Shown here one piece after another: positions 9,479 through 64,000 of a stretch of DNA of 64,000 nucleotides. The DNA is from Marsupella aquatica. Lineage: Eukaryota > Plantae > Marchantiophyta. Location: the NCBI GenBank assembly GCA_973895155.1, contig OZ316899.1:519573-583572 (forward strand), given 5' to 3'. Both the position numbers and the translations under genes were made by a program. Every line of letters starts with the position of its first letter. Position 1 is the stretch's first letter. The notes below the pieces were generated by a model that searched no databases, was not told the DNA's origin, and was given only the letters and a program-made list of their open reading frames with translations.

Positions 9479-9480
9479 TG

Positions 9481-15150: not shown

Positions 15151-15159
15151 AAGGGGGGG
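15151..15159 (+). promoter_or_regulatory. Polypurine tract of family C
   Basis: AAGGGGGGG just upstream of the 3' LTR. Confidence 0.8.
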
Positions 15160-15163
15160 TGCA

Positions 15164-40252: not shown

Positions 40253-42765
40253 TGAAGGTTCGTGCTACACATGTGACGCCATGGGCCATCAAAGTAAGGA
40301 TTGCCCCTCAATTACGCGACCATACATGGACCCCAGTTGAAAATTACGCAGGCTGAAGGTTCAAGCTACACATGTGGCGCCATGGGCCATCAAAGTAAGG
40401 ACTGCCCCTCGAAGGGGGGCAAGCTGAGCGGAGATGGAGGGCAGAAGGGCATTAAGGTAAGTATCGCTCTAACCGAATCCTTCGTAGTTGATGAGGTCCT
40501 TGTAGGGGATGTTCCTGCCGGAGAGAAGGTGTTATGGCGAGAGAAGATACCTAAGGTTAAGACAATGGATCATGAAAAGCTTATTTTTGTGAATGTTACT
40601 TCTGACGGTAATATGGGTGTTGCTTTGGTGGATATAGGCGCGATCGCTTGCTTCATAAGTGGGTAGGCGGCGACACGTCTTGGGGTGGATGTCCAAGAGT
40701 TGCTACAACCATTAGTGTGCAATTTTGCCAACGACACGAAAGGGATAGTGTCGAGAGTGGTGCATAGACTTTGGGTAGAGATCATAGGCAAACAACAAAA
40801 TTTTGTTAGTCAAGAGGTGTTCTATGTTCTAGACGGTTTAGCCGTAGACTTCATTTTGTCTACCATTATCTCAGAAAGCACAATGTTACCTTGAAACCGG
40901 GGGAGGAAGTGCTCCATTTTCCCAATAAGGGCGGTGAGCCCATCTTTGTACCCAAAATTACCAAAAATAAAGAAAGATTTCTTAAAGTAAGTAAAGTGTA
41001 TCGGCGAAGCAATGGTGGAAAGACTTCAAGGGTGGACAAGAATGTTTCTTCTTTCATCTCCACCCAGTTAAGGAGGCTGCTTTGCAATTGAAGGTTAAGT
41101 CAACTAAGGTTGGGCCCGACTACAGTCCTGAAATTCTAGAGGAATTCAATGACATGCTCTCGCAAAAGCTACCTAAAGGTTTACCCCCGCGGAGAGAAGT
41201 GGATCACCAAGTTGAGTTGGAGCCAGGTTTGGCTCCTCAGACTAAAGCTCCTTACCGTCTAAACATGAATGAACGAATGATGTTGAAGAACGCCTTGGAA
41301 GAGTTGATCGACCAAGGGTTCATTCGTCTTGGTAAGAGTCCTTATGGGGCGCCTGCGCTGTTTGTGTCCAAAAGGGATGGTACTTTGAGATTGTGCACAG
41401 ATTATTGGGTCCTCAATAAGCAAACGGTAAAGAATAAGTACCCGTTACTTCATATGGATGACCTCTTTGATTGCCTCTCCGGGGCTAAGGAATTTTTCTA
41501 AGGTGGACTTGTGATCTGGGTATTACCAGATCCGCATGGCTAAGGGAGACGAGTATAAGACCACAATGCGCACAAGGTTTGGATCCTATGAATTTTTGGA
41601 TATGCCGTTGGGGCTGTGTAATGCAACCGCAACGTTCATGAAGATGATGAATACCATCTTTCATGACTTGTTGGACCAAGGAGTGGTCATATTTATTGAC
41701 GACATCCTAATCTACTCAAAAATGTTGGAGGAACATGAGCAGTTGCTTAGAGAAGTGTTCTCTCACCTTCGTAAGGCTCATCTCTTTGCTAAACCTAGCA
41801 ATTGCAAGTTTGCGATGAACGAGATACAGTTCCTTGGCCATACCTTTACCCCGGAGAGGATAACGCCTAGTCAGAACAAGCTTAAGGAGATCAAAGAATG
41901 AGAGCGTTTGTCCAATGTAAGGCAAGTTAGAGCCTTCATAGGATTTACAAGGTTCTATCGGAGATACATGAAAGACTATGCAAGCATTGCAAGGCCCTAA
42001 ACACGCTAACGTTGAAAAACAAAGTGTTTGTGTGGACACAAGATTGTGAGTTAGCATTCCTAGAACTAAGCGGCTAATGATAATGTCGTCGGTTCTAAAG
42101 TTACCTGCGATGGGGAAGCCGTTTGAGATTTGGACAAACACAAGTGATTATGCCATTGGGCCTGTCTTCACCATGATGGGCGTCCTATGGCCTTTGAGTC
42201 ATGTAAGTTGGAAAATAATTGTATCACACCGGAAAGGGAAATGTATGCACTGATCTATGCGTTGAAGAAGTGGGAGATTTACCTTAAGAATGGTCCCAAA
42301 GTGGTAATACACACAAATAGCTTGCCGACCGGGTACTTAAATTCTAAGCCAAGGCTGAACCCCAAGGAAATGCGCTGGCAGATGTTCTTGGCGGATTTTG
42401 ATTTCGAAGGCTATCACGTTTCAGGGAAGACAAACACGACAGCTGATGCGTTATTGCATAAGGACCATCATCGTGTCAATGAGATCACGATGCTCAAAAC
42501 CGAGTGGCCAAAGGTTCTGGCCAAGGTGTATGGGGATGACAGGTTAGCTAAGGAATGGCAAAACAATGGGGGTAGCCTAGGCAATGTAAGGCACATTTTG
42601 TTGGGGTTGGATACCGCGCATAATGTCCAATTATGGCGATACAAGTAGAGGTGTGTGTACATCCCAAAGTCCCTAAGGTTAGAGGTTCTACAAAAGTACC
42701 ACGACTTGCCCTGGGGAGGGCATGGCAGACAAGCTGCTACGTATCGTAGCATGTCGCGAGATGTG
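40253..42765 (+). pseudogene. pol: Internal fragment of a family-C-like chromovirus (knuckle-PR-RT-RH-start of IN), decayed
   Basis: Colinear with ~11065-13490; the knuckle segment is tandemly duplicated (~40253-40305 and ~40352-40410). Confidence 0.88.
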
Positions 42766-43106: not shown

Positions 43107-45953
43107 ATCCGGGGAGGACTTAGATGAATGAGACTTGTGGGCAATGAGACGTGGCACTAGCGAAGGCAAGGAGCCAAGCTGGTCACACACATTAAGGACT
43201 TAGGCTAGCTGAGTCGGGTCAAGGGGAAAAGGGGTCGGGCTCAAGGTTGACCGTCCGGACCCGCGGATGGACTTTCAGTTTTGAGGGCTTGAGGTTGAGC
43301 TCCTCTTGGGCCCAAGGCCAATGGAGTTGACGCCATGGGCAACGGACACTTGGGGCGTGAGTTATGGCCCAATCCGGGTTTGGCCAATCGGGGACTCCAA
43401 GTGGTGATGAGACCTGAGGGCCTAGGCATGAGCACTGGATCAGCTTGATCACAACGAGCTAAGGCACTCCGCTTGCGGACGCCTAACGAGAAAGTTATGA
43501 GCGTTGTTAGTTGGTGGCGCGCAGTGGTGGACCTAGCCACCCAGCACCCTCACCAATCCCAGCACTCACGCTTAAGTGCCCTTGGTGCCTGAAAGCCTCC
43601 ACGGAATACCTTGAGCAAGCACCCTAGTGCCCCTTGCACCACCAGCGGCCCCTCCCATATGAAGCCGCACTTGCTCTCCAACACGACCGCTACTCAACAG
43701 TCCTCACTGTCTGCACAAGCACCTTGGTAAGTAACCCTTTAGGATCTAGAACTTGCCAAGTCTAGCATCCTAACTCAAGCTCAACAGACATTGGTAAATA
43801 GGTCAGCGATAGGTCCTCCCCATGCCATAAGCCGGAACCAAAACCCCCGCCCACTGTTTGTCCAAAACATTTCCTTCCTTGGGCGCGGCCCGGGTTCCCC
43901 CTTGTACCTATCCATCACCAACTGACCGCCCTGACCTCAGGACATGCTCATGGCCCAAATAGCATAGTTTGTCCTAAAGCTTGTCCCAAGCTTGTCCCAA
44001 CACGCTGGGACCAGAATGGCCCCGACTCTAGCAACCAACTCCCGATTCACCTCACTGATGGTCTAGGGGCCAAACAATCTTGGAACTCAACCTCCACACC
44101 TACTTGGCCTTGCTTCCCCAACACAATCTCCCTTGGGAGACTAAACGCGGCTTGGCTGCTGTTCGGTAGGATTTGGCAAGCGGACGAGTTAACACCCGCA
44201 AACCCTTAGAACCCATGGTGCCCCAAACCCAGATGAGCTAAGGAGGGCGTAGCCCATGTTGAGATATTTCCAACGCACCCAAGAAGTCCTCCAACGGACT
44301 TCCCGTTGGGGAGATATCGTCGTTTCTGTTTGGCAGTTTCCCTTAGTATCGCGACCGCCGCGGCTCACAACTTTGGCTCGCCCTTAGCCCCCAGGCAGAC
44401 ACCACTCCCCTCATATATGCTTTTGGAGACCTGCCACCCCCGGACCAACTTTGGTCCCTAAACATTTGGCCCCCAACCCGAATCCTATTGCGCATAATTG
44501 GCGCACCACCAACTGGCAATGCCCATAACTTTCTCGTTAGGCATCCGCAAGCGGAGTGCCTTTTCCCGTTGTGATCAGGCCAACCCAGTGCTCATGCCTA
44601 GGCCCTAAAGTCTCATCGCCGCTGAGCCCCCCCGATCGGGCCATAATTTGCGCCCCAAGTGTTCGTTGCCCATGGTGTCAACTCCATTGGCCTTGGGCCC
44701 AAGAGGAGCTCCCACTCAAGCCCTCACAACTCAAAGTCCATCCAAAGGTCCGGACGGTCGTCCTTGAGCCCGACCCATTTTCCCTTGACCCGACCAGCTC
44801 TCAACTAGTCCAAGTCCTTAGTGTGTGTCACCAGCTTGGCTCCTTGCCTTCGCTAGCGCCACGTCTCGTTGCCCACAAGTCTCCCCATGCTAAGTCCTCC
44901 CCAGATGGCCTATCCGGGCCTGGACCATAAGGGAGCTTGGCGTCGGAGTCAGCGACGCTGGAGCTAAGTGTTAAGGTAGTCGAGTTCCGTGACTCGCGCC
45001 CAGTATGTGTCATACGGTCCGAGTTGGGGACCAAAAGTTTAGGGACCAATGTTGGTCCGGGGGTGGCAGGTCTCCAGAAGCATATATGAGGGGAGTGGTG
45101 TCTTCTTGCGGGCTAAGGGCAAGCCGAAGTTGTGAGCCGCGGCGGTCACGACACTAAGGGAAAGTGCCAAACGGAAACGACGATATTTTCCCAACAGGAA
45201 GTCCATTGGAGGGCTTCTTGGGTGCATTAGAAAGCTTTCTCCTGAGCTCAGCTGATTTGGGGGTGCCATGGGTGTTGGGGTTTGCGGGTGTTAGCTTGCT
45301 TGCTTGCCAAATCCTATCAAAATAGTAGCCAAGCCGCGTTAAATCTCCCAAGGGCGTTGGGGAGGCAAAGCCAAGCAGGCGTGGAGGTAGAGTTCCAAGG
45401 GTGTTTGACCCTAGACCATCAGTGGGGCGAGAACCAAGAGTTGGTTGCTAGAGTCAGGCCCATTCTGGTCCCAACGTGTTGGGACAAGCTTTAGGGCAAG
45501 CTATGCTATTTGGGCCATGAGCATGTCCTAGGGTCAAGGTGGTTAGTTGGTGATGGATAGATACAAGGGGAACCCAGACCGCGCCCAAGGAAGGAACTAT
45601 TTTAGACGAACAATGGGTGTGGGTTTTGGTTCCGACTTATGGCATCGAGAGGACCTATTGCTAACCTACTTACCAATGTCTATTGAGCTTGAGTTAGGAT
45701 GCTAGACTTGGGGAGATCTAGATCTTGAAGGGTTACTTATCGAGACGCTTGGTTGCTTGCACAGACAGTGAGGACCGTTGAGTAGCAGTCGTGTGGGAGA
45801 GCAAGTGCGGCTTTGTATGGGAGGGGCCGCTGGTGGTGCAAAAAGACACAATGTTACTTGCTCGAGGCATTCCGTGGAGGCGTTCAGGCACCAAGGGCCC
45901 TTAGACGTGGGTGCTGGGATTAGTGTGGGTGTTGGGTGGCAAGGTCTACCACT
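43107..45953 (+). repeat. 5'-truncated family-C LTR split by an opposite-orientation solo LTR
   Basis: 43107-43522 plus 45000-45953 is colinear with ~8082-9478; ends CTACCACT at 45953. Confidence 0.82.
43523..44994 (-). mobile_element. Solo family-C LTR nested in another family-C LTR
   Basis: Termini AGT...ACT; TSD CGCGC at 43518-43522 and 44995-44999. Confidence 0.9.
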
Positions 45954-47350: not shown

Positions 47351-49229
47351 GCGCAAAAAAACCGGAAGCTGCAGACCCCCCTTCGGCATTTGCTTTTTCT
47401 TTCACCAACCAGACCTTGATTGGTGCTCATACTTTTTGAGAAGGTGCGCCTACTTTTCTTCTACCTCCACACCAAATTTGAGCCAATTTGGTTGAGCAAA
47501 TGTTGCTCTAGAAAATATTTACCGTTATTGATTTTCTCTATTAACACTACTACACTATCATCCATTTTTGCAAACCCAAAAATATCGCAACTAACAAAGA
47601 ACTCTACATCAAGAATTCTACGTGTTGCGATTAAACGCGCATTGCAATACCTTCGCCACTTGCGAACCTAAATGCTTCGCAATTGGAGCATTGCAACACC
47701 ATCACAATGACTTCGCAATTACCCAACCACATAGCCTCGTAATTTGCCATACCTGTGCGATGTTTTGCATATCGCATGCAGTTCGCAAAGCCCCACACCA
47801 ACGCCGCTGCGGTTGTTCAAATTTGTGAACGCTTTTGCTTTGCAGATAGTTTGCGGTATTAGTTGACTCAGAATCTGAGATACTTTTAGGTTCATAAGTT
47901 GCCGTTTCATTTGTATCGCAAATACTGGAGTGTTTTGCTTCAAATAGAACGAATCAATTGCGTTCGCAATTAGCAAAGAGAGAAGAATGGGATAGTTGTG
48001 AACTAGATTGAATGTAAAAGTGTGATGCAATGTTGCTCACAAGTTGCGAGGTAAATGAGCTGGTTAGTTTTGAAGTTTAGGAATTCTCAACCGGTTCGCA
48101 ATTGTTTGAAAGCACAAGCTTCAATAAACATTTTGCAAGGTATTCCTCTTGGGTATGGATCCAATGTATTGGAAGGCAAAATTGGTGTTTATAAGATGAG
48201 AAATAGGTGCATGTACAAAATGTAGGAGTTCAAGGAACCCTATTCTTAAGAAGGGTGGCATATGTGATGCCAAGTGGACCCTACTAACCATATCCTACCT
48301 CTTCCTATCCTAAGCTCTTACATGGCTAATCACTCAAACTTACTAAAATGGGCTCTTTCTACCCCTCTTGGCCGGCTTCTTGCCCTTATCCTTTCGGGAA
48401 CGTATATCCTGTTGCTAACGGGTGTGCAGGGCCCGTGGGTGCTCCTGCTTGTCCTCATGCTCCTGCTTGTCCTCCTTCTCCTGCCCCTCCTGCTCATCCT
48501 CATTGTCGTCACCTGCCTCCTGCTCCCCCTCATCATCAACCTGTCTCGCTGACGCAAGACTAGTGCGACTGCCACGATGGGATGAACCGCCCTCATGGCT
48601 ACTGTCTCCCCCCTGAGCACCACTAGTAAGGGGCTGATCCTCATCATCACTACTGCTCACCCAAATCCTGCATCCATATACTCAATGAGTTTATGCAAAA
48701 TTAAAGGGTCCCCAACAATGTTTGCATGAAAACTAAAAAATTGTCAAAACTAAGATACTCACAGTAGCCAACTCGACATCTACCATCGCAAAGAGGTACT
48801 TTTGTCCGTGCTCCATTGCTGTCTCAATATGTGCCTTTGATATCTTTCTCTTGTATTTCCGGTACTGTCATGCATGCCACCAAAAATTAAACACAAAAAA
48901 ATAAAACCTAACTTATAACCTAAAACTCACCCTAATTAAACCCCACAAAAGCAAACCTCATTCCAAGGGAATTCATAAACTTTGCGAAGCTAATAGGTTG
49001 ACAACATGCGAAGGCCAATATTTTGCAAACTCATTGCGATGTCCGTTGCGATGCGCGTTCCTTCGCAACGGGTTCGCAATTGGGGAAAAACAAAAGTCCA
49101 TAATAGAGTTTGCGAACAGGTTGCGAAGGGATATGCATCGCAACAGGTTTGCAAACTATTTTCCCGAGAGTTTTTAAAAAGGTGCCCGAAATTCTAAGTG
49201 TTAGACATGACCTAAAACAATACACAAGC

Positions 49230-52200
49230 TGTGATGCCTTGCCAGGATCACAAATTAATAACTAAGCCTAAAAAAATGGCTAAATAAGGATAGATAGAGA
49301 GTATAAGGTAACAATAAAGACCGATGCCAATTTCTGCGTGTAGATGATAAAGGAAAGGATCGAACGGTTGAGATCCAGCCGATTGGAGTTATGACCTAAT
49401 CCATGCTTGATCACAAGGACCCCTAAGTGGCGGCTTCAGAGTAAGGTGACCAATACTCTGCCATTTTGCATTCTCGTGTACATGGTTTCGACATTGAGGA
49501 GCGATTGTCAGTGGAGTGCTAAGGTGGATTGGGAGATTGCGCAAGTTCTTGGCATTCGGTGGAATGAACACGGTGAATCAGGCAGGGAATTTTGGGGCTG
49601 TTGTCTTGAAGAAGCAAGGCAGCTGATACCTACGTATGAAGACGTTGAGCTGGAGCACGCAGCCAGAGAACGAGCGAAGCTTGCGCAATTGTGGGGAATT
49701 CACAAAATGATATTTGTAGATGCGGAGGAGGTGTTGGAAAAGTTCTCGTGGACACCCACCAGTGCGGAGCTTGACAAATTGCTGATCCGGGAGAATAAGG
49801 TCGTGGGGATTAGGGAGGCAATCAAGAATGCAGGGCAGCCACTTTGGGAATTGAAGGGTCACACTGCAAAGTGGACGAAGGAAGCCATTCTCGGGGAGTA
49901 TTCAGGCGCTGAAGAGATGAAGCGCAAGGGAGGTTCGGTATCCGCCACTCCAGCAAAGCGAACTAGGTCGGAGAGACCAATCAAGATGGAATTCGGGCCA
50001 GTTAGAGATCAGGCTGTAGAGGATAAAACCATGACAGGGTGGGCAAACAGGTTACCTACCGATTTACAATTACAGTTCGCAAGAGATGAGGATGAGGTCT
50101 TCAGTGCCGTTCAGGATAATAAATATGCAAGATATATGAATGACACTGGGTTGGAGGGCTTTGTCAGGTTGTCCTGGAGGATGGTAGACATATCAAATGA
50201 GGATCTATTGGACTTCGTGGGATGCTGGGAGGCTTCTTCCAACACGACGCTGTTGTATGGAAAGGTGTTCGAACTAACACCTGCGCTTATCGAAGCCCTC
50301 TTCGCTTTACCAATAGGAAGGAAGACTAAGGTGGAGCAAAGGAAGACGTTGTCGGATGACCAGTTCATGTCATTTCCAGGGCCTTCCACTAAGAATGGGT
50401 TTTTCAGGATTCAATGTACCAACTCGCATATAGGGCAGTTGATTGATTTCCTGAGAGTCACGTTGCATTGTACCTTGCCGAGAGCAAACATCGGCAAAGC
50501 CCAGGTATTTTTGGTGGAGAATATCGATGCAAGCCGAGACTACAACGACTATCTCTTAATGCAGTTGAAGAAGGCATTAAATGAAGAGAAGCATAGCATT
50601 GGGGAGGGAGCGGTATCCAAACTAGGGTACCATCTGCAATTACTTTGCCGATATGCAAGAAGCCAGTCTTTTGCACCGGTGTTGCCTATACAGGAGCGGA
50701 TGCCAATCACTGCACCACTTGAGGAGGTGGAGGAGGACCAGGAGCCTCTAAGCAAACAACGCCACGGGAGGAGGTCGGCAACACCGGCAACATGAGAATG
50801 GGAGCATTCCCCTATCAAGGAGCCAGAGGTAGTAACATATGATGTAGTGAGAAATCTGTTGCGCCAGCCTACTCTCATAATAATCCATATGCAGGCATCC
50901 AATTGGTTGAAAGGAAGATGACTGCCGAAGAGAGAAAGAAATATGACAAGCAAATGGATTCGGAGACAGATGAGGAGGTAAGCCGAAGCCAGGAGAGGCC
51001 GGTATTAAGAGCTTCTAACAGAGCCCAAGTGGAGGGACTTGTGGAGGAAAGTCAACCAGCAGCAGCCCAACAATATTCAGAGGAAGAGATCGGGGGCTTT
51101 GGAGGAGAGGCCAGCATGCTAGGTAGTCAGGTTAATGTGGATGATTACGACAACGACTATGTCGATCACGGGGAGAGGCCGGTACCAGGAGTTAGAACGA
51201 TGGGAAGGTTTTGTAGAAGACTTCCCACAGTCTTCTATGGCAAGCCGGAGGACCAGAAAACACCAAAATCTCCTCCACCAGATGTGACGCCATTGGAATT
51301 TGACAAGATGAAGGAAGCTGAAGCCGGGCTACAAGAGAGGATTAAGGAGTGGGGGGCCCAGAATGCAGAACAGGAATGCCAGCTACCAGGAGGAGAGTGG
51401 CCGGAAGAAATAAGACGGCTTAGTGAGAGGTAGGCCGAACCTCTCACTGACTGTGATCAATTACGGGCAGAGGCTTGGGAGAGACAACCTCGATGGCAGA
51501 TGCCAGTGTCACCTGGGAGGTCAAATTACACAAGAAATTGGGCTAAGGAGTATGGAGACATGTGTGGACTCTTAGCCTTAGAAATCTTCGGTAACGAGTT
51601 GGAATCCGGGCCATTTCTTAGAAAAGAAGTGGCTGATCAAACAAGACTGGAGGAGGCAATGACGTTGGAGCGGTTAAAGAAAGAGGAGGTAATCGCTTGG
51701 CTTCGCCCCATGGAAGCCGAAGTTGCTAAGACAAAGCCTGGTCAACCAACTCAGCAGGATCTCTTGGCTAAGCAGCAGGAATTGGAGGTGGCGAACAACC
51801 AATTGGAAAACTACCAATTGGATAACCAGCAGATCAAGGAAAATTTGACAAAGGTAGAGCTAGAGTTAGCCGATTCAAAAGCAGAAGTACAGGGTCTAAA
51901 TCGCCAGGTTGAGAGGCTCAGAAAGACGGCTAAGGATCAGGCCACCCAGAGCGAGAAGGCCTTGGCAGAAGCCCAAAGGAAGTATGACAAGTTACTCGAC
52001 CGGTTGGAGGCCATGCGTGAGAAGCATGATGACGCTATGTGCACAGCGGCCAATGATCACCTAAACCGGGTTCAACAGATACGCAAGGAGCTTCAGGATG
52101 AGCTAACCAGGACAAAGCAGGCATGGATGGACGAGGTCACAAAACTAGAAGGCATCAACGACTCCTTGAAAGCAGTCGTAGATAAGCAAGAGTTGGAGAT

Positions 52201-53839
52201 CGTGCAGATCTTAAATGAGGAGCTGAAGATGGCCAGGTCCGAGATACAACGGCTTAACGATGAAGTTGAAGACGTATCTCAGGAATTGGAGGAGGCCAGG
52301 GATAAGATGCTCGGGTTGCAGAAGCGTGCCGACAATCAAACAGAGAAATTTAAGAAGTATGCCAAAGCGGGATATGGGTCACCAACTAAAAGGCTTCCCG
52401 TCAGTAGTATGGTAGGCGGAAATACAGTGAAGCCGAAGCTGAAGCCGAGCTCACTGTTGTCAAGCGTGATTGGGGGCAAAGCCATGCAGTTGGTAGCAGA
52501 TTTGGCAAAGATGTTCATGGGGCCAGGCGATAATAAAGTTAAGCCCCTTAAAGCCACTCCGGAGGAAGTCGAGAGCATGGCCGCTCATATTTGTGGTACT
52601 GTGGCCCTGAAGGCAGCTGTGGTAGAGGTAAGTACTACGGATCAACTTGGAGCTGCGGTAACAAGTTCAGATAATGGTACTGCTTCTATGGACGCCCAGA
52701 ACATGAAGCCGTGGGTTATCGAGACCGAGCGCATCGGGGAGCAGGCTTGGATTGAGGAAGTTAAGGCAAATGCTCTCCAAGCCGTTTCCCAGGAGGATGC
52801 CGATGCAGCAGCCGATGTCGGGGCCGACAAACCAGAACCCAAAGTCGAGGAAGCCGAAGGGGTCAAGCCGGAGCCGATGGCATGAGAAGGTGCAGAGTCG
52901 GAAAATTTGGACTTACCCCCGGTCATTTGACAATTAAGGAGGGCCAGTCATCGGTTGGAAGGAGGACGTGGCGGCAGGAGAAGGGCTTGGGCCAGAAGGG
53001 CGCGGCCGTTGTAGGATGGGACAGGGCAAGTAGCGCCCTGTTGGCTTAGGTAGTATTAGATGCTCGGTTCACACAGGGTTCCGGGCTAGTCAAGTTTTTT
53101 AGGTGATAGTTTTTTAGGAGGATTATCGTGGTGGAAGGACGTGAGTTTTGGTTAGGATTTCCGCCTTTTCCCCTGAACGCGCTGCAAGGATAAAAACCTG
53201 GGCATCGTGGCCCGGGGGGGCTTTTTCTTAGTCAAGGCTTTAATGTAAATCTGTATTGTTGTGAGCACAGGAAGCTCTCGGCTAAATCTAGACCGCAGGG
53301 TATCAGTAAACCACCAGTTCCCTTGGATTTCTGAGCAATTGTTTGAATTGAGTTGGCCTCGTTGCATAGTTCCCAGATTCTTGCCATCCAAGAAGTTGAG
53401 TGTTATGATATTTGTTGCTTGATCGATTTAAGTCAGATAGGGTGAACTGTTGAGCAAAATACAATCGCATTGTCTTGATTGGAGACTGCCCAATCAAACT
53501 CTGAGAGAAAAGTGAGGATTGAGAGTGTTTAGTCAGTGAAGTGTGGGTTGAGTCAGTCTGAAAAAGACCTTCAGCCGACTTAAGAAATTAAGCCGTAGGG
53601 GTACATTCCGGGGGCGGAATACAAATATACCTGAAGAAGTTAAAGAGGAATTAGGTGTCTCAGTTGTGCACAATTCACAAGCCCAGTGAAAGAATCGGTC
53701 CGGTAAGTGTGGATCAAAGGAGAGGATCGCGTTTCCAAACCGAATAGCTGCCAAAGGGCAAGAGGACGAACATAAACAAGTGGTTTATGATCGATTGAGG
53801 GTAGTTCTTGGGGTTAGAGGTCTTGGAAAATGCGCCACA
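49230..53839 (+). mobile_element. Giant solo LTR (4610 bp) of a family-B sister lineage (B'), containing a long ORF
   Basis: Termini TGTGATGC...GCGCCACA; perfect TSD CAAGC at 49225-49229 and 53840-53844; no gag/pol inside. Confidence 0.9.
49407..52885 (+). pseudogene. LTR-encoded ~1,150-codon ORF (PMD-like domain + coiled coil), two stops and one frameshift
   Basis: ORFs 49407-50795, 50903-51433 and 51500-52885; the last two share a frame separated by a single TAG; homologous to the B1/B2 ORFs. Confidence 0.82.
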
Positions 53840-55918
53840 CAAGCAAAGCACATGAGAGCTTCAACATTCATGGGATTCCATTCACTTGCATTGCCCCACT
53901 GGGAAACTAAGTTGGAAAGAGAGTACAAAGGGGAGGAGGCACTCACAAAGTGAGCCTTGGGGCCGGGGAGCCCGCCTTGACCCAACCTGTGGATTGGATT
54001 GGGGGTGGCCTTTACTCGCTTGGCTGCATCAATGAATCGCTTGGGTGGTCTTCCTTCTTGATCAACCACCTTCTGTTCGAGTCCCTTCAGGTCATGGTCA
54101 GGGGAGAGCTTCCCGGCCTCCTTTGCCTTCAAGGCTCCAGCCAATGCATCCTTCCACTGATCTAACTCACCAGCTGCTTTGATCTGCACCTCAATCTTGT
54201 AAATGCATTCCAAATGTCCTCGGTGAAATGGAGGGGTCTACGCAAATTCCTATACGATCTCAAGTCTTTCAGGTGGGCTTTGATCTTCATCTTGTCATGG
54301 TATCTCATTTGAGACATAAAATTTGAAATCTTGTCTCCCAGCCATTGCTCATCTATGTCAGGTCCGTTGCAAAATGCACCCTTGATCTGATTGATCACCC
54401 TCTTTCATTTTGCCTTCTCAACCTTTCCCCACTGCATGCCTCGTGAGAAATTGCTTGTGATGATCTGCTTGATTGTGCTCTTAGCCCCTACATAGGCTAG
54501 CTCTGTTGGAGTTCCACTCGTCTCCAAGGCAATGAATGGCAACTTTTTCCTTGCTTCCTCTTTTTGACGTTGCTCATCCCTCTGTTTTTGAATTGCATCC
54601 CTCTCCTCTTTTCTCTTCTTTTTTTCAAGGGCTTGAGGAGAAGCAACTCCCGATTTATCCCTCTCCTCTCTCTTCCTTTTTTTCTCTCTAGCTTTCTCCT
54701 CAGCTGCGGCCCTTTCCTCCTCCCCTCTAGTAGCCTACCCTGCTAGAATTCTTGTCTGCAGAATCTGCCCTAGAATGCCACTCAACAAGGCAAGCCCTGC
54801 TGGAGTATTCAAATTCACTTCGCCCAATTGTGCAGCATTGAGATGTTGGGCCACTAAATCCGCGAATGCATTCCCCTCCTTCTCTTGATTCGTCCCATTG
54901 CCACTACCACTAGCACCACTAGCACCATGTTGTCCACTTCCCTCACCACCAGCCATAGCCTTCCGCCTCTCAAGTCTCTTTCTTCTCCTTGCGCGCAGCT
55001 ACACTACCCTCTCGCCTTCTCCGCTCGTTCTCTTGACAAAACATAGGAATGAGCTCAATGCGAGCTCCCGCCGACACTTATGGCATTCAAAAAAAAGGGT
55101 TAATTGAGGGTTTACTTTGGGTTAGGGTTCACTAAGGGTTTAGGGTTAGGGTCCAGGGTAGGGGTTTGGGTTAGGTTTTCATTTAGGGTATGCTTTCATT
55201 TTTCCATTAACATAAAGGGTTGGAACACTCTAGGACTACTTGCACGACACTTCCGCATCTTTTTCAAAGTTTTGGCTAATGCACATGCATTGCAAGAGCC
55301 CGGGCATCTGAAAGGTACAACTTGTTTTAAAGCCTTTTGGTTTATATTGGAACTATTGAAGGTTACAGTCTATCATCCCCTCGGGGGTTTCACTTCCACA
55401 AAAATGGCATATCACGTGCGACGAAGGATAGGGTCATTTTATTGGTTCTAAGGGAAGACTTAAGAATTTTTGTAGAAGAACAATAGGGTCTTTTAAATTT
55501 AATTTTGAGACTTATAAGAATATTAGGGTATTTTTAATCCAATTTTTAGAATATTCCAAGAATATTCCAACTTTATAGGGGTTAAAAAATAAATTTTTTT
55601 CTTACATTTGAGGGGCTCTGAGGCCTAAAAACGTCGCAGGCGAGGTCCCCATATAGTGAGACCCCCGAGATCATCCCTTTCTCTACTTGATCATGAGTCA
55701 TGGTTTATAATGTATTATATATTTGCAGATTTTTCCCTCCTACTTCTAGATTGGGTTCATCAAGTTTGAGCCTGAAGACCTATAGGCATTGCTGAGCCCG
55801 AGTCTCAAAAACGGTAATATTCATTTCACTTCAGTTTAAAGTGTACTTAGGGTTTAAAAAGGATGGTTTTGGGATTTTTTACTAACTCCGGATTCCAAAC
55901 ATTTGTTGCATTTGCCAG

Positions 55919-56239: not shown

Positions 56240-57054
56240 GTATCCACTAGGCCTACACCCACGGCACCAACACCCTATGTTCCCTCACAAGGAGTTCTAG
56301 ATGCTATAGGCTTGGCCCTTTCACAAGCTTTTTGTCTAGTTGCAACAGGGCAAGGAAGTGTTGGGACAGTTGAGGGTGTTGGTATTGTTACAAGAGGGAA
56401 AAAAGATCTAAAAGGAATCCGAGAGGGGAAGTTGATCAGTATACCTGTAGGGTTGATGGTAGGTGGGGACCTTGTATGTTCACAGGGAAATGTGTGCCTC
56501 TCATAAAGGATTGGAATCCTGATTGCCTTGGTTTGCCATGTGATATAACCTATGGTGAGGAGATAGAGGTTTGGGGAAGGCGTTGGGTTGTCAAAAGCTC
56601 TACACTAGGGGAGAGACATGGGTATGGAGTTTTTTCTTGTGAGGACATCATTGTGGATGATATGGGTGGAAAAGGGCGGTCTCCAGATGGACCAACATTG
56701 TTCCCATATGGTGGACCCATTTACAAGAGGAGACATTGGAACATGATCCTTGTACAACACCCTGAGTGGAAGACTTATGCATTGGATATGGATACTTTTG
56801 ATGGCTGCACTAGAAAGTATAGTGAACAACGTATAATTGATGGAGATCCCATCCGTAGTGGGAATATAGCCGGTTTCATAAATAGTACTGTGGGGTCTCG
56901 GCCCAAGCGTAGGCAAAATTGTGAGTGGGTTTTTGTTGATGGTCCCCCTCCAGCACCATATGGACAGAGATATCATCATGACCATTGTCTGGTTGTGGCT
57001 ACAAGGACCATTAAGGCAGGAGAGGAGTTGTTTACTCATTATGCGTGGGATTAG
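56240..57054 (+). CDS. SET-domain exon of CACTA-2 (SET core 56476-57054 open; one frameshift in the linker)
   Basis: GYGVFSCEDI, IDGDPIRSGNIAGFINS and VATRTIKAGEELFTHY; acceptor AG at 56238-56239. Confidence 0.82.
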
Positions 57055-57212
57055 GCTTAGTTATTTTAGGGACTCTCATGTATTACATGTTCATTCATTG
57101 CGTGTGAACATATTTTTGTAAGCTACCCATGTCCTTTTCATATTATTAATAACATATTTGTCTCACTATTATTTGGAGTTTGATTGCAAATGCTTTATTG
57201 TGTTGTCCATAG

Positions 57213-58094
57213 AATGTGCGACCTAGTCAAGATATGTTGCCAAGGAGGTTGAGAGCTACATATGATGAAATGGGCATGCCACGAGACAGAGAAACATCAT
57301 CAACAGATTCCTCATCCAGTGACAATGACATTGAAGGTTCTGATGAAGGGGCACCTAGGACAGATTATGAGGTCATGCAGGACCAGGAGACAGCCATGGA
57401 TGACTTCATGACAGATTGGTTTGGTGTGGACGTTGATGGTGAAGGACGTGGACCACCCAATGAAGGAGCTCCCCCACCAAATGCTGCACATGACCCCCAG
57501 CCTCAACATACACCATAAGGTCAACAACAATGGGAAGAAGCGGAGGCACATGCTAGAACACCTATTTATGGGGGTGCTCGCTTGAATAGACTCTCGATCT
57601 GCCATCTTGGCATTGATGAACCTTCAGGCAAAACACAAGGCAAGCAATGCCCTACTATCGGATTTGTTTGCAATTTGTCATGACCTCATGTTACCCAGTG
57701 ACAATGTATTGCCAGGAACTTGGAAGGAGGCAAAGAGAGTTTTATCATCCATTGGTATGGAATATCATATCATTCATGCTTGTGTGAATGACTACATCCT
57801 ATATCATGAGACCAATGCCAACAGGACTGAGTGTCCAATTTGTCATGAGCCTCGATACGAGGCCAACATGTTGACCTCAAAGGTGCCCAGGAAAGTTGTC
57901 TGTCGGTTTTCCATTATTCCTCGATTGTTGCACATGTATCGATGTTCTGACTTGGCAGAATTGATGGTATGGCATAAGACACATCGATCAGAGGCCGGTG
58001 TCATGCGGTTGCCAGTTGACTCCCCTGCTCACAAGCATGTGGAGTCACAATGGCCAGAGTTTGCCAATGACCCTCGTCATGTGAGGTTGGGGTT
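57213..58094 (+). pseudogene. CACTA-2 transposase, N-terminal part (truncated by retroelement insertion)
   Basis: Starts at an AG acceptor (57211-57212); LMNLQAKH, IIHACVND, FSIIPRL, VDSPAHKHV and DPRHVRLG align with the CACTA-1 transposase. Confidence 0.88.
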
Positions 58095-61000
58095 TGTGGT
58101 GCGTCCCGTGGCTCCGTAAACCCAAGAAACCCCCCAGCTCAAGCCGATTCCCGCAGGTTTCGCGCTTGGCGAGGCCGTTTCCGCGGCTTAGCGGCATGGG
58201 ACGCTGCTAACCTTCTACTATTACTATTAACATTTTACACACATATACTGGACAGATCCTTCATCGGGTCATGAGATACGTAGCTGGCCTAATCTAGGCC
58301 TTCCCTCGTCTTCCCCTCCGTCTTGTTAGGTATGTTTGGATTCCGCCGCCGGAATGATCCCCAATAGGCTTGGTTAAGCCGCTAAGACCTCTCTCAGCTC
58401 GACACATCCAACTCTCACTCCCCTGCTTACTTTCCTTCCTTCTGGTTGATGTGGGCACTCTTCACACAAGTTAATGCGACACACAAATAGCAAAATGACT
58501 CATTCTGACTGAGTCATACCATGCACTTGCCATACAAACAGTACATCTCATACACAAGCTCTGCGAACTAAGCCGTGAGGCCAACTCTATTCAGCTCTTA
58601 GGCATGAGGAAACATGAATATACACAAGGGTCACTGTATGACTAACCGAGAGCTTCTCGTACTACTTGATCCCAACCCGGCTAGTGCAAACTAAAAACTT
58701 GCTAAAGAAGAGGCCCTGAGCTCCCCGCTGCCCAGGTACTTATCCTGGTAGTGGATCCGCCTAATTCTTTGCAGCGTAAGCCTAATCTACCTAACAGTAA
58801 TCTACTTGCCCGGATCTACCTATGTACAGCAAGGCAGGAGCACAAGTGTTGCTCCTACCAGTGGAACCACAATCCCACTAAGCTAAGTGTCAGGGTCCTG
58901 ATCCTAATCCTAAACTTGGAGATCAGCGCCCACCCTGCCCACTCACGCCTCCTCCCTCCACGTCCGCCCTTCCTAAAAGGAACGACGCCCTTGCACCGTC
59001 ACGACACCGGTGGTGGATCCTCAATGGACGCCCCCAACGCTTCCTCCTCAGCCACTGTCGTAGGTTCGTTTTCTGACAGATTACCTGCCCTTGACTGAGT
59101 CAACTATCCATCGGCCTGACTGGGTCCACCATCGGCGTCGGCATCGGCTCGGGAATCATTCTCGGCTACGGCCTCAGCCTCGACTATGGTCTCCCCGGCC
59201 TGCTCAAGAGGCGGATCTGGGATACCGGCCTCATTACTGAGTAGTTCGGCTTGGGCCGCACCACCCCCACCTGTGATGATAGCGGGATCTATTGCCGTAT
59301 TCATGCCGGAGGATGGTGCTGGGTCTACTTCCTTGGTCACCACGACTTGTGGAGTCGGATTACTCCTTGACCCTGAAGGTTTTCGCTTCTTCTTCTTTTC
59401 TGGTTCGGCAGCTGGTCCCTTCCCCTTCTCACTTACTTCCGGCACTGGTGCAGGTGGCGCGGCTTTTTCTTCGGCCAGTACCACTCCTGGTAACTTGGTT
59501 GCCCCAATTGGAGTTGGGCCTGATGAAGACAAGCACTTAAATACTGCGGCTTGTTTCTTCAGCCGCTCCGTTTGGTTGTCGGCCCGTCGCTGGAGGTTCT
59601 CCATCTTCCTCGTGATTTCCTCCAACTCCTCCTGGGTCTCATCCAGGTCCTTGCGCGCCTCCTCTAGTTCCTTCTGGGCTTCCTCCCGTTCTTTTTTCAA
59701 GGTAGTCCTCTCCTCCCGGGTTGCTCTTAGCTCCTTGTCGAGCTCTGCAATGATGACAGACTCCATCTGGTTCATCTTGGCGTAAGTCTGATCGAGCATC
59801 TCGTCCTTCTCCCTTAGGTCGGCCTTGAAGCTGGCCGTCAGGGATGCAAGCTCCTGCTACAGCGCCATAATCCCTTGATAGGATTTTCCTAACTCGGCCT
59901 CCTTCTGCTCAAGGGCTCCGCGGATTTTCTCGAGCTCCCCCTTCAACGCCCATTCCTTTCTTTGGGTCTCCGCCATGGCCCGGCTGTTGGCTGTTATGTG
60001 GGCCTCCTCTGTATTCCTCAGCTCTCGCTTCCACTTCTCCCTCTCTTTGATCGTATCGGCCAACTCTCCCTGTGTCTGAGTCAGTTTATCCTTGATATTC
60101 TGATTATCAGCCTGCGCGGTGTCCAACTGCCCCTGCATGATGTTCAGCTCATGCCGTTTAATCCGCAGTTCATCTTGGGCTTTCTTGGCCGCCCTTAGAT
60201 CTTCAATCTCGGCTTCCATCCTCCTAAGCCGCCGAATGACCTCGTCCTTCTTGCTTCTCTCTAAAGCCACCGCTTCTTCTAATTGGTGCTTCTCCAACTG
60301 CTCCCTATGGAAAAAGGGTCCTACCTCCAACTCCTCTCCAAAGATGCCGAGCGCAAGTTCCCCACACATCTCACCATACTCCATGGCTCTATTCTTAGCG
60401 TAGGTGGAGTAAGTAGAAGTGATCGGCATCGCCCATCACGGCCTCTGCTCCCAAGCCGTCTTGCGGATCTCTTCAATCGTGGCTAGAGGTTTGCTTCCTT
60501 TTTCGGCTAGCCGCCTGATGTCCTCCGGCCAATCTCCTCCTGGTAAATCCTTTTCCCTAGCCAGGGCTGCCTCCTCTTCCTGCCTGATTCGCTCCTGAAA
60601 TTCCTGCACCGTCTGTTTTATGCCGTCAAAGCTCGGGGGAGCAACATCTGGTGGGGGAGACTCAGGGCTACTCTGCTGGTTGGGGTCCCCTCGTACTACC
60701 CTTGGAAGTGTGGGGACAAACCGGCCACAGGTCCTTACTCCTGGAACATGATGGTCCGACCCATAGCCGGAGTTATCATGGCTGCAGTCCTCCATTGCCT
60801 CCTCTATTTCTTGGACGTCCGGCTTCTCCCTCTCCTCTTCGTCGGTAGGAGCTTCAGGCAATTCTGCCTCAGATTCAGAGCTTGAGACTCCCACATACAT
60901 TCGAACACCTGGCTTGGATTCCGTCCTGATTCTCTCCTCGTCTCCAGCAAAGGGGTTTTCTCTTGTGAGCCGGTGTAGGCCTACCTCTGGAGTGGTGTTC

Positions 61001-62760
61001 TGCATTGTTGCCGTTGCCGTTGCCGTTGTCGTTGCCGATGCCGATCTCTTTTCTTTCTCCAGTAGTTTCAGCAGACTCTGCATGCCTGGTTGCTGCATCG
61101 GCAAGTCCTCCTTCCTGGGCCTAAACACCTGCTCGATCGTAGGGCTAACAGGTGGTTGAGGCTTCTTTGCTACCGGCCTCGGTTCTGGAGCTTCCTCGAG
61201 TGCCCTTACCTGCAGGGGAAGTACTGGGGCAAAAGTCTGACCTCTGGCATACCGGCACAACAGCGGCATGTGATAGCCAAGCCGCGACACGCTCCCCATG
61301 CCGATTACCTGCTGCTCCTCCTTTAAGATCTTCTTCAATTGGTTGAGGAGGTACCCGTTGTAGTCCCGGCTTGGGTCTGGCCTCTCTGCCAGATAGACCT
61401 TGCCTTGCCGATCTCCGCCCTCGGCAAGTTACAATGCATGGTCACCCACAAGAAGTTGATCATCTCTCCTATGTGCGGGTTGGTGCAGGTGTTCCGGAAG
61501 AAGCCATTCTTCGTTGATGGCCCGGGGAACGACCGGAACTCCCTGTCAGGCAAGGTCTTCCTGGTATCAACTTTGGTCTTATTGCCTATCGGCAAGCCAA
61601 ACACTTCGGCAATCACTTTGGGGGTAAGATAGAAATCCTTCCCATATATCCTCGTGCAATTGGTCTCGGGTTCCCATGACCCCATGAATTCTAATAGGTC
61701 TGACTCCGGTACCTCCGGCTTCAGCCATGGTAATCTTACAAAGGCCTCTAAGCCGGATCCGGCCATGAAGCCTTGGTACTTCTTGGTCTGCATGGCCGTA
61801 AAGCATGCATCCTCCTCCCGTGCAAAATGTAGTTGCACCTCTACCGGTAGGGTTGCCGCCCAGCCCTTCCAGGTGTCATCCCTGGTTGGAATGGCCTTGA
61901 TGGGATCGACCTCCTCCTCTTCAGCTTCTCCCTGCCTCCTGCTCTGCTGCTCGGCTGGCTTCTTTGGTGCCGCCGACCTCGTTCTTTTTGCCGGGGTGGC
62001 TTCATCGTTGACGGCTCCCTTCCTCTTCATCTCTGCTGCTGTGGAGGTTTCTCCTAGCACTGTTGCCTGGGTCCACCTTTCCATGCTACCCTTCAATTCC
62101 CAGTGTATGTCGTTGCAGTTCTTGATGGCCTCTCGGATGCCGACGACGCTGTCTTTGCAAAACAGAAGATCGTCGAGCTGATTGGAAGTAGGAGTCCACA
62201 AGAACTCATCTTTGATGAGTTCGCCTCCTAAGAAAGCCGTCTTCTGCAGCTCCCACAATCGAGCGAGCTCCTGCCATTCTCGAGCTGCCCTTTCTGATTC
62301 CTCGTCCTCGTAAGTCTTGATGTACTCAGTTGCCCGTTCGAACAGGCATCCCCAAAAATGTGCCGCTTGATTGACGTTGCTCATACCCTCCTTAGGTCGA
62401 TCGTCGGTATCTACTCTCTCCCCGAGTGCTTGCCTAAGCAGCTGACAGTAGTTGGCCTCCCGTAGTCGTCTGCCTAGTTCGTGCTCGCAAATGAGCCACC
62501 ATCTCCTGCAAGCGCTCCTTACCCCTCTCCTCTTCAGGTCCTTCCTCCCGTTGATCCTTCCTAGCCGCCGACGCTTAACGTGCCCTAACCCTAATCGAGT
62601 TTTCACCCCCAGCGTCCTTACCTCCGGCCTCGGCCCGGGTTCCATGGTTGCCCCTAATTGTTTATATTTTCCTTGTTTTGTCCCTATACTAAGGTGTTTC
62701 TAGGGTGCCTTCCTGCTTTACCCACTTAACTGGTCGAGTGATTCCTGTCTAGGCATCACA
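58095..62760 (-). repeat. Giant 3' LTR (4666 bp) of B2
   Basis: Starts TGTGATGCC right after the PPT and ends GCACCACA (7/8 inverted repeat); same start as the solo LTR at 49230. Confidence 0.88.
59104..62645 (-). pseudogene. LTR-encoded ~1,180-codon ORF (PMD-like + coiled coil), one frameshift and two point stops
   Basis: 60436-61338, 59857-60429 and 59104-59799 share one frame separated by single TGA/TAG codons; frameshift near 61400 links to 61335-62645. Confidence 0.85.
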
Positions 62761-62773
62761 TAGCTCCCCACTT
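62761..62773 (-). promoter_or_regulatory. Polypurine tract of family B
   Basis: AAGTGGGGAGCTA between the integrase stop and the LTR-initial TG. Confidence 0.75.
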
Positions 62774-63983: not shown

Positions 63984-64000
63984 AAAGACTGCGGCTTGCT

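Follow-up and report, generated by a model that had tools for sequence, protein, structure and literature searches.

Giant long terminal repeats with a putative accessory gene in Ty3/gypsy retrotransposons of the liverwort Marsupella aquatica

Results

The window, a 64,000-nucleotide stretch of Marsupella aquatica DNA, holds three long repeat units, each with the remains of a long open reading frame (ORF) (Table 1). The unit at 49230-53839 has TG...CA termini and is enclosed by a perfect 5-bp target-site duplication (TSD), CAAGC on both sides; with the ends of the unit set by its homology to a second unit, that of element B2, the chance of a match at all five positions is about 1 in 1000. A Pfam search with the open pieces of the unit returned no matches, and the gag-pol ORFs of a relative from Calypogeia fissa found no tblastn matches in it, so that neither gag nor pol is present by these searches. 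No terminal direct or inverted repeats were found within the unit, which is therefore not a small LTR-internal-LTR element. With both termini, a TSD and no internal region, 49230-53839 meets the criteria for a solo LTR, and this reading is supported, being consistent with all of the tests run (termini, TSD, interior and inner repeats). An earlier, sequence-only reading of this DNA had described the unit in the same way, with TG...CA ends, a perfect CAAGC duplication, no gag or pol and one decayed ORF of about 3.5 kb, and all of these points were confirmed. The ORF, on the + strand, survives as three open pieces separated by approximately one frame change and two in-frame stops, and homology supports the span from 49590 to 52363. 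The non-coding tail that follows it is presumed, by inference, to be the promoter/R/U5 region.

The second unit belongs to B2, an element that runs past the window end at 64000 and whose 5' end is outside the window. Its integrase shares 61% amino acid identity with the integrase of the C. fissa element L002, and its best database relatives are all from liverworts. Along the element, the integrase is followed by the purine tract AAGTGGGGAGCTA and then by TGTGATGCC at 62760, and the unit terminates with ...GCACCACA at 58095. The sequence-only reading had held that the start seen in the solo unit recurs at 62760, right after the integrase and the polypurine tract, that the unit is 4666 bp long and that its ORF begins 115 bp into it; each of these observations was reproduced. 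The ORF is broken by approximately one frame change and three in-frame stops. No duplication brackets the B2 unit itself, which on the element strand is preceded by AGCTA and followed by AACCC, and the unit adjoins the purine tract; it is therefore one end of B2 and did not arise as an insertion nested within it. At its other end B2 has cut into a CACTA-type transposase: the Pfam Transposase_21 match at 57607-58094 breaks off at the B2 junction, where it has reached position 36 of a 213-position profile, and a paralogue of the transposase at 32550-32030 continues beyond the breakpoint. The window contains no full element with two ORF-bearing LTRs, the 5' LTR of B2 lying outside it.

The third unit, at 914-4611 (the left copy), aligns to positions 61770-58095 of B2, and its ORF remnant has approximately three frame changes and five in-frame stops. 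The sequence-only reading had listed it as a third, partial copy; its presence is borne out, but it is not of the same family as the solo unit, and it is probably the product of a tandem duplication beside a related 0.9-kb LTR without the ORF, A'. The junction between the other short LTR, A, and the left copy has the trinucleotide CTT in common with the sequence after A', as expected of a tandem duplication. A' resembles the tails of the giant LTRs in its hairpin block and its final ~35 nt. The ORF is not an indispensable part of the LTR, given these 0.9-kb LTRs that lack it.

At the DNA level, the solo unit aligns with B2 and the left copy only at its termini and in one motif of ~35 nt. The ORFs of the solo LTR and B2 are nevertheless collinear, with 38-53% amino acid identity, a relationship visible at the protein level only. 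By these comparisons the three copies represent two diverged families, the solo unit (family 1) and B2 with the left copy (family 2). The solo unit is not the same LTR as the other two, which corrects the earlier reading. An inverted-repeat motif, CATTCC-N6-GGAAT, is found five times in the window, always in LTR tails, against 0.11 matches expected, and also in each C. fissa LTR tail examined. This hairpin block is kept in all nine of the tails aligned and lies 165-270 nt from the LTR end, near TATA-like sequences.

Table 1. Features of the window that bear on the ORF-carrying LTRs
Feature	Position	Strand	Remarks
A, second short-LTR copy	1-913	+	Cut by window start; 93% identical to A'; hairpin motif 579-595
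5'-truncated giant LTR, family 2 (left copy)	914-4611	+	Ends ...GCACCACA; 81-85% identical to B2
LTR-borne ORF remnant, left copy	915-3709	+	5' part missing; broken
Hairpin motif, left-copy tail	4344-4360	+	
A', related ~0.9-kb LTR without ORF	4633-5536	+	TGTA...GCGTGACA; hairpin motif 5210-5226
TSD, left copy	49225-49229	.	CAAGC; read directly, equal to 53840-53844
Solo giant LTR, family 1	49230-53839	+	4610 bp; termini TGTGATGC...GCGCCACA
LTR-borne ORF, solo LTR	49407-52885	+	Broken, listed as one part; open pieces
Conserved globular domain of solo-LTR ORF (predicted), orphan fold	50067-50705 (bounds approximate)	+	tblastn to C. fissa LTRs, hhalign, AlphaFold model
Non-coding tail, solo LTR	52886-53839	+	~0.95 kb; ~59% alignable with B2 tail; holds hairpin block
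Hairpin motif (CATTCC-N6-GGAAT), solo-LTR tail	53604-53620	+	
TSD, right copy	53840-53844	.	CAAGC
CACTA-type transposase fragment	57607-58094	+	Cut by B2 insertion; neighbour, not part of the element
Bases flanking B2 LTR end	58090-58094	.	GGGTT on + strand; expected TSD, partner outside window
3' giant LTR of B2, family 2	58095-62760	-	4666 bp; termini TGTGATGCC...GCACCACA
Hairpin motif, B2 LTR tail	58340-58356	-	
LTR-borne ORF, B2	59104-62645	-	Broken, listed as one part; ATG at 62645, 115 bp into LTR
Polypurine tract AAGTGGGGAGCTA	62761-62773	-	Adjoins B2 3' LTR; same tract before 3' LTRs of C. fissa L002 and L003
Integrase reading frame of B2, 3' end of pol	62801-63784	-	Pfam rve, E 6.7e-10
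B2 pol segment just upstream of integrase	63813-63998	-	tblastn with L002 ORF between RNase H and integrase

A full element comes from C. fissa, and three further loci of that species agree with it. In L002, direct repeats at 294-4741 and 10946-15352 (4.45 kb, 93.4% identical) flank a 6.2-kb gag-pol interior in which Pfam finds, in order, zf-CCHC (the gag zinc knuckle), RVT_1, RT_RNaseH, Integrase_H2C2 and rve. The repeats begin TGTGAGG, the 3' repeat directly follows the same purine tract as in B2, and homologues of the ORF are present in both LTRs; the earlier inference that a full element carries two copies of the gene is thus met in this relative. L002 has no matching TSD (CCTTT versus TTAAT) and may on that account be an inter-element recombinant. 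L003 has the same purine-tract junction and the ORF in its 3' LTR, so that AAGTGGGGAGCTA followed by TGTGA is common to B2, L002 and L003, and in L004 and L008 the ORF is in the 5' LTR, with a conserved leader and then gag-pol downstream of that LTR. In the absence of a comparison with tRNAs, no primer-binding site was identified, only the conserved leader block, 45-60 nt past the C. fissa 5' LTRs. The window lacks this block, and no leader-bearing 5' LTR was recognisable there. TG...CA termini are found in the solo unit, B2, the left copy, A', L002, L003 and L004. Paired repeats, these termini, the 5-bp TSD, the polypurine tract and the domain order are all as required, and from the sequences I infer that the units are LTRs of Ty3/gypsy (Metaviridae) retrotransposons. 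The criterion for the chromovirus branch is not met: Pfam gives only rve and Integrase_H2C2 in the integrase frames of B2 and L002, with no chromodomain at the C-terminus. In C. fissa the ORF forms 30 protein clusters spread across many chromosomes, one of them with 28 members.

Every copy of the LTR-borne gene in the window is broken. The expectation that each solo-LTR event leaves a complete gene behind can accordingly hold only for the time at which the solo LTR forms. Between the B2 ORF and the left copy, Ka/Ks is 0.21-0.22, with the differences concentrated at third codon positions. A comparison by hhalign of the window/Logan profile with the C. fissa profile gave a probability of 97.9% (E 5e-13), and AlphaFold modelled the matching residues 251-455 of the C. 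fissa homologue with a pLDDT of 82-98. Amino acid conservation beyond the reach of DNA alignment, the Ka/Ks ratio, the cross-genus profile match and the predicted domain together indicate that the ORF is a real gene. It evolved under purifying selection, and was therefore of use to the element (or the host) during the divergence of the families.

No named match to the protein or to its domain was found in Pfam, among PDB sequences and folds, or among viral predicted folds (BFVD). No transmembrane segment was detected (maximum Kyte-Doolittle 19-residue mean 1.37 over all open pieces), and the product is therefore not env-like. The ORF-bearing strand is purine-rich and the C-terminal half of the protein rich in E, K and A; the protein is predicted to be soluble and to consist of a conserved globular domain, whose fold is unknown, and a coiled-coil-like, E/K/A-rich stretch behind it. 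That it plays an accessory part in the replication of the element, or in how the element copes with silencing by the host, is no more than a guess.

Discussion

I consider it highly probable that the best overall explanation of these units is that they are LTRs of a liverwort Ty3/gypsy clade, each carrying an accessory gene. In this clade the polypurine tract, the plus-strand primer site, would lie directly after the integrase gene, so that all of the sequence from there to the terminal CA would be LTR, and reverse transcription would copy this whole stretch onto both ends of the element. Such an LTR would be made up of a short head, then the accessory gene, which in the window families has ~1,150 codons, and lastly ~1 kb of non-coding tail. 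On this explanation, 49230-53839 would be the leftover of LTR-LTR recombination in family 1, 58095-62760 the 3' LTR of B2, and 914-4611 a truncated family-2 LTR. The promoter and R/U5 are inferred, without RNA data, to lie in the tail around and downstream of the hairpin block. If so, the gene would lie in U3, and its transcript might be either the 3' portion of the genomic RNA or a subgenomic one, like that of a retroviral U3 gene, although this too is inference. A bolder proposal, that a large, selected accessory gene sits inside the U3 of these liverwort LTRs as a plant counterpart of the retroviral U3 genes, each integrated element holding two copies and each solo LTR being a dispersed gene copy beside its own regulatory tail, possibly self-expressed or adopted by the host, remains tentative; I regard it as possible rather than probable.

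One may ask whether the LTR has been drawn too long. The true LTR could be the ~1-kb tail only, like A and A', which would make the ORF an ordinary extra ORF of the internal region, placed after pol and before the 3' LTR as in Athila-type elements. There is indeed a short LTR-type sequence of 0.9 kb that shares the hairpin block and has a 3' terminus much like that of the giant LTRs, and A, the ORF region and A' have the superficial look of LTR, internal region and LTR at 1-5539. However, in B2, L002 and L003 both the TG start and the purine tract precede the ORF, the ORF is upstream of the leader and gag in L004 and L008, and the TSD of the solo unit encloses the entire 4.6 kb. As to A and A', the segment between them has a complete LTR tail and terminus of its own, neither a primer-binding site nor a purine tract was found beside either, and the shared CTT follows the pattern of a tandem duplication. 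With the repeats of L002 extending over 4.45 kb, ORF included, this explanation is already contradicted, and I hold it to be very unlikely. The purine tract also bears on the idea that 49230-53839 is a non-autonomous, one-gene mobile unit moved in trans by an integrase that recognises TG...CA ends, the B2 unit being a nested copy. Although the integrase-type ends, the 5-bp duplication and the single gene would suit such a unit, the one in B2 lacks its own duplication and starts exactly at the tract, the same juxtaposition is seen in L002 and L003, the matched copies of L002 flank one interior, and the solo unit has no terminal repeats of its own. This makes the idea extremely improbable.

A different question is where transcription begins. 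The units could be LTRs in which it starts upstream of the ORF, placing the ORF in a very long R (or R-U5) as the first cistron of the genomic RNA, comparable to the ORF upstream of gag in elements of the Retrosat2/RIRE8 type. Transcription starts were not mapped in this analysis, the ATG of B2 is merely 115 bp from the LTR start, and plant Ty3/gypsy elements that combine long LTRs with extra ORFs upstream of gag are known (PMC3485330). On the other hand, non-coding conservation peaks in a block of the tail close to the LTR end and to TATA-like sequences, which is by inference the usual site of a plant LTR promoter, and the distance from LTR start to ORF varies, from 115 bp in B2 to ~800 bp in L008. 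An R of ~4 kb would, to my knowledge, be unprecedented. I thus regard a long R as unlikely, without dismissing it. That the ORF is no gene at all and merely reflects the low complexity and purine richness of a long LTR might be argued from the purine-rich strand, the E/K/A-rich C-terminal half, the lack of Pfam or PDB relatives and the broken state of all window copies. Yet the protein is conserved where the DNA no longer aligns, the Ka/Ks of 0.21 comes with an excess of third-position differences, the profile match crosses genera (E 5e-13) and a domain is predicted at high confidence; the selection and profile results already contradict this argument, which is almost certainly wrong.

An accessory gene within the LTR, the reading preferred here, has several consequences. 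LTRs are usually regarded as non-coding regulatory repeats, and a conserved, selected gene of more than 1,000 codons inside one contrasts with that view. LTR finders and maskers would conceal or misplace such a gene in annotation. In evolutionary terms, the gene would be doubled with each insertion and survive solo-LTR formation, and mechanistically there is the question of how a 4.5-kb LTR gets transcribed and reverse-transcribed. The orphan protein, with its confidently predicted new domain in at least two liverwort genera, is a well-defined target for follow-up.

Cassandra TRIM elements have LTRs with a 5S-rRNA-like gene unit, a Pol III RNA gene of ~120 nt. As in the liverwort, the plant LTR itself holds a gene-like unit and every LTR, solo or paired, spreads a copy. 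However, the Cassandra LTR is tiny and its gene an RNA gene, whereas the liverwort LTR has a 3.5-kb protein-coding gene under purifying selection. LTRs over 3 kb are uncommon. Ogre-type elements have LTRs of this size and an extra ORF upstream of gag. The rice elements Retrosat2, RIRE3 and RIRE8 likewise combine LTRs over 3 kb with an extra ORF upstream of gag (PMC3485330). The liverwort elements resemble all of these in their unusually long LTRs and in having an extra ORF that is specific to the lineage, has no known function and evolves more rapidly than pol. In the Retrosat2/RIRE type, however, this ORF0 is internal, between the 5' LTR and gag, and present once per element, whereas the liverwort ORF is inside the repeat, with just a short leader between the LTR end and gag. 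Assignment to the Retrosat2/RIRE8/Ogre type was rejected because the ORF homologue is within the repeats and not between the 5' LTR and gag.

In the plant Ty3/gypsy elements Athila and Bagy2, extra env-like ORFs in sense orientation follow pol and precede the 3' LTR, and the purine tract is downstream of these internal ORFs (PMC7264820). Two reviews place all plant extra ORFs in the internal region (PMC7264820, PMC11963269), and the sequence-only reading, which had located them there, agrees with the former. In the liverwort the tract is upstream of the ORF, the ORF is in both LTRs and there is no transmembrane segment. An Athila-type env-like ORF was rejected on the same grounds, as the ORF comes after both the tract and the start of the LTR, it is duplicated in the LTRs of L002 and no transmembrane segment was detected. 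As far as I could find, a gene within the LTR has been described before only in a few retroviruses, with no precedent in LTR retrotransposons.

In retroviruses, genes lie in or overlap the 3' LTR: sag of MMTV is in U3, and nef of HIV/SIV and bel/bet of foamy viruses overlap U3. The liverwort gene differs from these in its host, in belonging to a Ty3/gypsy element without env, and in being far larger, with ~3.5 kb filling about three quarters of the LTR. Kinship with a viral protein was found neither in sequence nor in fold, and the placement of the gene in U3 is undemonstrated. What it has in common with sag, nef and bel/bet is that an accessory coding sequence lies downstream of the plus-strand primer site, hence within the LTR, and is doubled in the integrated element. 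A retrovirus-like arrangement, with an accessory gene in the LTR, would thus have arisen independently in a plant retrotransposon lineage.

LTRs that contain a gene

The solo unit, a 4610-bp giant LTR, starts with TGTGATGC, ends with GCGCCACA and has CAAGC directly outside both ends, and on its + strand about 3.5 kb is occupied by one reading frame (the ORF) in three open pieces. The unit lacks terminal repeats of its own, whether direct or inverted, as well as Pfam gag or pol domains, and tblastn with the gag-pol of a related element gave no match to it. A captured transposon inside the unit was considered and rejected, as the inner inverted repeats sought as its marks were not found.

A second unit of this kind belongs to B2, a minus-strand Ty3/gypsy element whose 5' end lies beyond the window. 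After the Pfam integrase core frame of B2 come the purine tract AAGTGGGGAGCTA and, at 62760, TGTGATGCC. The unit that starts exactly at this tract extends for 4666 bp to GCACCACA, with an ATG 115 bp inside. Its flanks differ (AGCTA before and AACCC after, on the element strand), and because it lacks a duplication of its own it is not a nested insertion. The far end of the unit cuts a CACTA-type transposase frame: the Pfam Transposase_21 match stops right at the junction, at profile position 36 of 213, while a paralogous copy elsewhere in the window continues past that point.

The left copy, a 5'-truncated giant LTR, matches B2 61770-58095 at 81-85%. The DNA of the solo unit cannot be aligned with either of these except at the termini and in one short motif, yet when translated its open pieces line up with those of B2 in the same order, at 38-53% amino-acid identity. 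For this reason I assign the three copies, on sequence comparison, to two diverged families (the solo unit to family 1, B2 and the left copy to family 2) that have one conserved gene and one LTR layout in common. The sequence-only reading had treated all three as a single LTR type, which holds for gene and layout but not for the DNA; its coordinates for the three proved correct throughout on re-examination.

Two further kinds of element were observed in the window. Both diverged copies of a CACTA-type region (44-55% amino-acid identity) have a SET-domain ORF adjoining the Transposase_21 ORF, which suggests a CACTA family carrying a SET-domain gene. Another Ty3/gypsy element has LTRs of about 1.5 kb, the 3' one with an internal deletion, and is present in a second, rearranged copy with inverted LTR fragments.

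Related elements in Calypogeia fissa

The closest named relatives of the B2 integrase are all from liverworts, Calypogeia fissa (62-69% identity) being followed by Marchantia and Riccia (48%). From this I infer that the window itself probably comes from a liverwort closer to Calypogeia. One C. fissa locus, L002 (GCA_965154635.1, CBCUJL010000008.1:14753670-14774644), has two direct repeats that are 93.4% identical and both start with TGTGAGGCAG, the second directly after a purine tract identical to that of B2. Between them lies a 6.2-kb interior that encodes, in order, a zinc-knuckle gag, RT, RNase H and integrase. The ORF pieces of the window match both repeats by tblastn. Both copies have decayed into short open pieces, and those from one repeat find their counterparts in the other at 85-98%. 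The prediction that a full element would carry the gene twice is thus met in a relative. L002 has no matching target-site duplication, and so may be a recombinant between two insertions; such recombination would leave the positions of the repeats relative to leader and purine tract unaltered.

Three other C. fissa loci fit this picture. L003 has the same junction of tract and TGTGAGG; an ORF homologue lies in its 3' LTR (4.5 kb), and of a 5' LTR the final 241 bp are present at the expected distance. L004 and L008 contain the ORF in the 5' LTR, which ends in TTAACA and CTAACA, respectively, and is followed by a conserved leader and gag-pol.

Several other features of these loci were recorded. 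The integrase frame of L002 continues across the purine tract and ends about 30 nt into the 3' LTR, unlike that of B2, which stops 41 nt before the LTR. Tandem arrays (95-98% identical) lie upstream of the elements in L003 (unit ~142 bp) and L008 (unit ~313 bp), that of L003 occupying the place where most of the 5' LTR should be. A 340-bp stretch of L008 immediately before the 5' LTR occurs again (95%) at the place where pol breaks off, which hints at a nested or rearranged element pair.

No ORF homologue was found within 10 kb of the Marchantia and Riccia relatives (48% integrase identity; one locus each), and these have ordinary repeats without a matching purine tract. Since they lack the ORF, this layout may be restricted to a subset of liverworts, insofar as one locus from each genus can indicate. 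In a metagenome contig, L007 (ERZ22866046), whose integrase is 61% identical to that of B2, a small Elf1-type zinc-ribbon ORF lies shortly before a gag-pol frame of 1543 aa; this is a related element with another type of extra ORF.

Anatomy of the giant LTR

In each giant LTR a head precedes the ORF and a tail of about 1 kb follows it; the head measures 115 bp in B2 and about 0.8 kb in L008. All nine tails that were aligned have in common a block of about 30 nt around the inverted repeat ATTCC-N6-GGAAT, with invariant arms and a variable loop. In these tails the block lies 165-270 nt from the 3' end; for the inverted repeat the range over every LTR of the group, in both genera, is 165-330 nt, and its flanks are conserved. 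The window contains five occurrences against 0.11 expected by chance, and all are in LTR tails. Whether the repeat is a promoter element, an RNA hairpin or a protein site is unknown, and these are candidates only.

Coordinates of LTRs, inverted repeats and other features in the window and in related loci
Sequence	Feature	Coordinates	Strand
Window	Solo unit	49230-53839	+
Window	B2 3' LTR	58095-62760	-
Window	B2 integrase core frame	62801-63784	-
Window	Left copy	914-4611	+
Window	Short LTR A	1-916	
Window	Short LTR A'	4633-5539	
Window	Inverted repeat	579-595, 4344-4360, 5210-5226, 53604-53620	
Window	Inverted repeat	58340-58356	-
Window	Transposase_21 paralogue	32550-32030	
Window	CACTA-type region	56476-58094	+
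Window	CACTA-type region	33987-31007	-
Window	Other Ty3/gypsy element	8005-16052	
Window	Its 5' LTR	8005-9478	
Window	Its 3' LTR	15164-16052	
Window	Its RT/RNase H/integrase	11396-14283	
Window	Its rearranged second copy	40348-42765, 43107-45953	
L002	Direct repeats	294-4741, 10946-15352	
L002	Inverted repeat	4572-4587, 15186-15201	
L002	Integrase frame past tract	10946-10975	
L003	Inverted repeat	4874-4889	
L003	Tandem array	3509-4363	
L004	Inverted repeat	4728-4743	
L008	Inverted repeat	13669	
L008	Tandem array	3912-5488	
L008	340-bp repeat	8868-9207, 18255-18594	
L007 (ERZ22866046)	Zinc-ribbon ORF	1039-1290	
L007 (ERZ22866046)	gag-pol frame	1366-7661	

TATA-like sequences follow the block in the tails. 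I infer, though it has not been shown, that promoter and R/U5 lie in the tail, which would place the ORF in U3. It would then be transcribed only from the copy in the 3' LTR, as the distal part of the genomic RNA or of a subgenomic RNA, and this too has not been shown. A transcription start upstream of the ORF remains possible; R would then be very long and the ORF the first cistron. In the stretch from the ORF stop to the tail, a relic purine tract was also sought as a test of an upstream shift in primer use, but the coding strand is purine-rich throughout and the search does not discriminate.

Short LTRs around the left copy

The left copy is flanked by A and A', which are about 0.9 kb long and 93% identical. 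Both have the hairpin block, the final ~35 nt of each are similar to the terminus of the solo LTR and end in GCGTGACA, and A' starts with TGTA. On these grounds they are a related LTR type without the ORF, and it is undecided whether they are ancestral, the ORF having been acquired later, or a deletion derivative. I reject a reading of A' as 5' LTR leader sequence, because A and A' have the block and an LTR-type 3' terminus.

B2 reads ccaagg-CTT-catggcc at the position that corresponds to the start of the left copy, whereas the junction between A and the left copy reads gtgaca-CTT-catggcc, and CTT also follows A'. I infer from these junctions that the whole arrangement could have arisen by one tandem duplication of a 4.63-kb segment at 3 nt of microhomology. 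The duplicated segment would be made up of the distal 3.7 kb of a family-2 LTR, then a 22-bp spacer, then the short LTR. If this is true, a further family-2 LTR, about 93% identical to the left copy, is predicted to the left of the window. The explanation would also remove the sole feature that could be read as a short LTR with an internal ORF.

An orphan gene under selection

Every copy of the ORF in the window is broken. Rough, homology-guided counts give about one frame change and two in-frame stops in the solo LTR, one and three in B2, and three and five in the truncated left copy. Between B2 and the left copy, dN/dS is 0.21 and 0.22 in two ungapped stretches (189 and 135 codons), where differences by codon position number 15/13/45 and 15/9/30, and between the families the protein is conserved whereas the DNA is not. 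A profile of window and Logan sequences matches the C. fissa protein profile over 142 columns (97.9% probability, E 5e-13). In C. fissa the ORF family comprises 30 protein clusters on many chromosomes, one cluster having 28 members at at least 90% identity.

With the first B2 piece as query, an exhaustive phmmer search through 1.84 billion representatives gave 15 hits, nearly all short unnamed Logan fragments. The first open piece of the solo ORF, used in a word-indexed protein search, gave no match, although the length window of this search may have excluded relatives. No Pfam family scored above threshold, the only sub-threshold matches being of coiled-coil type in the C-terminal half in both genera, and no relative was found among PDB sequences. 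An early AlphaFold model from a shallow alignment (pLDDT 48.8) was left out of the fold searches. An AlphaFold2 model of the C. fissa protein P0145, from a 30-sequence alignment, places residues 251-455 at pLDDT 82-98, and this is the region common to the window ORF (~50067-50705 in the solo LTR). With this second model as query, no significant match was found among PDB folds (best E 0.64, TM at most 0.21) or BFVD viral predicted folds (best E 0.038, TM 0.12). Nowhere in the protein do 19 successive residues reach the hydrophobicity of a membrane helix, so it is not env-like. It is an orphan whose globular alpha/beta domain is followed by sequence that is rich in E, K and A and probably forms a coiled coil. 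The observation thus holds and its original interpretation is supported: the elements are of a known type but built in a new way, and they carry an orphan gene that selection has kept.

Comparison with known elements

A review describes the extra ORFs of plant elements as internal, mostly between pol and the 3' LTR (PMC7264820), in agreement with the sequence-only reading, and a 2025 paper on Retand likewise places them in the internal region (PMC11963269). LTRs longer than 3 kb are uncommon but occur in Retrosat2, RIRE3 and RIRE8, where ORF0 lies between the 5' LTR and gag; Retrosat2 is ruled out as a precedent since its ORF0 is internal (PMC3485330). For liverworts, a genome paper names the usual Ty3/gypsy lineages, and coding LTRs go unmentioned in the passages searched (PMC12885004). 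My phrase search of the literature for LTR-encoded ORFs returned only retroviral cases, apart from one false positive in which the wording meant "between the LTRs". Although the liverwort ORF has no sequence or fold relationship to retroviral genes that lie in or overlap U3, these may be regarded, by analogy, as its nearest counterparts in operation.
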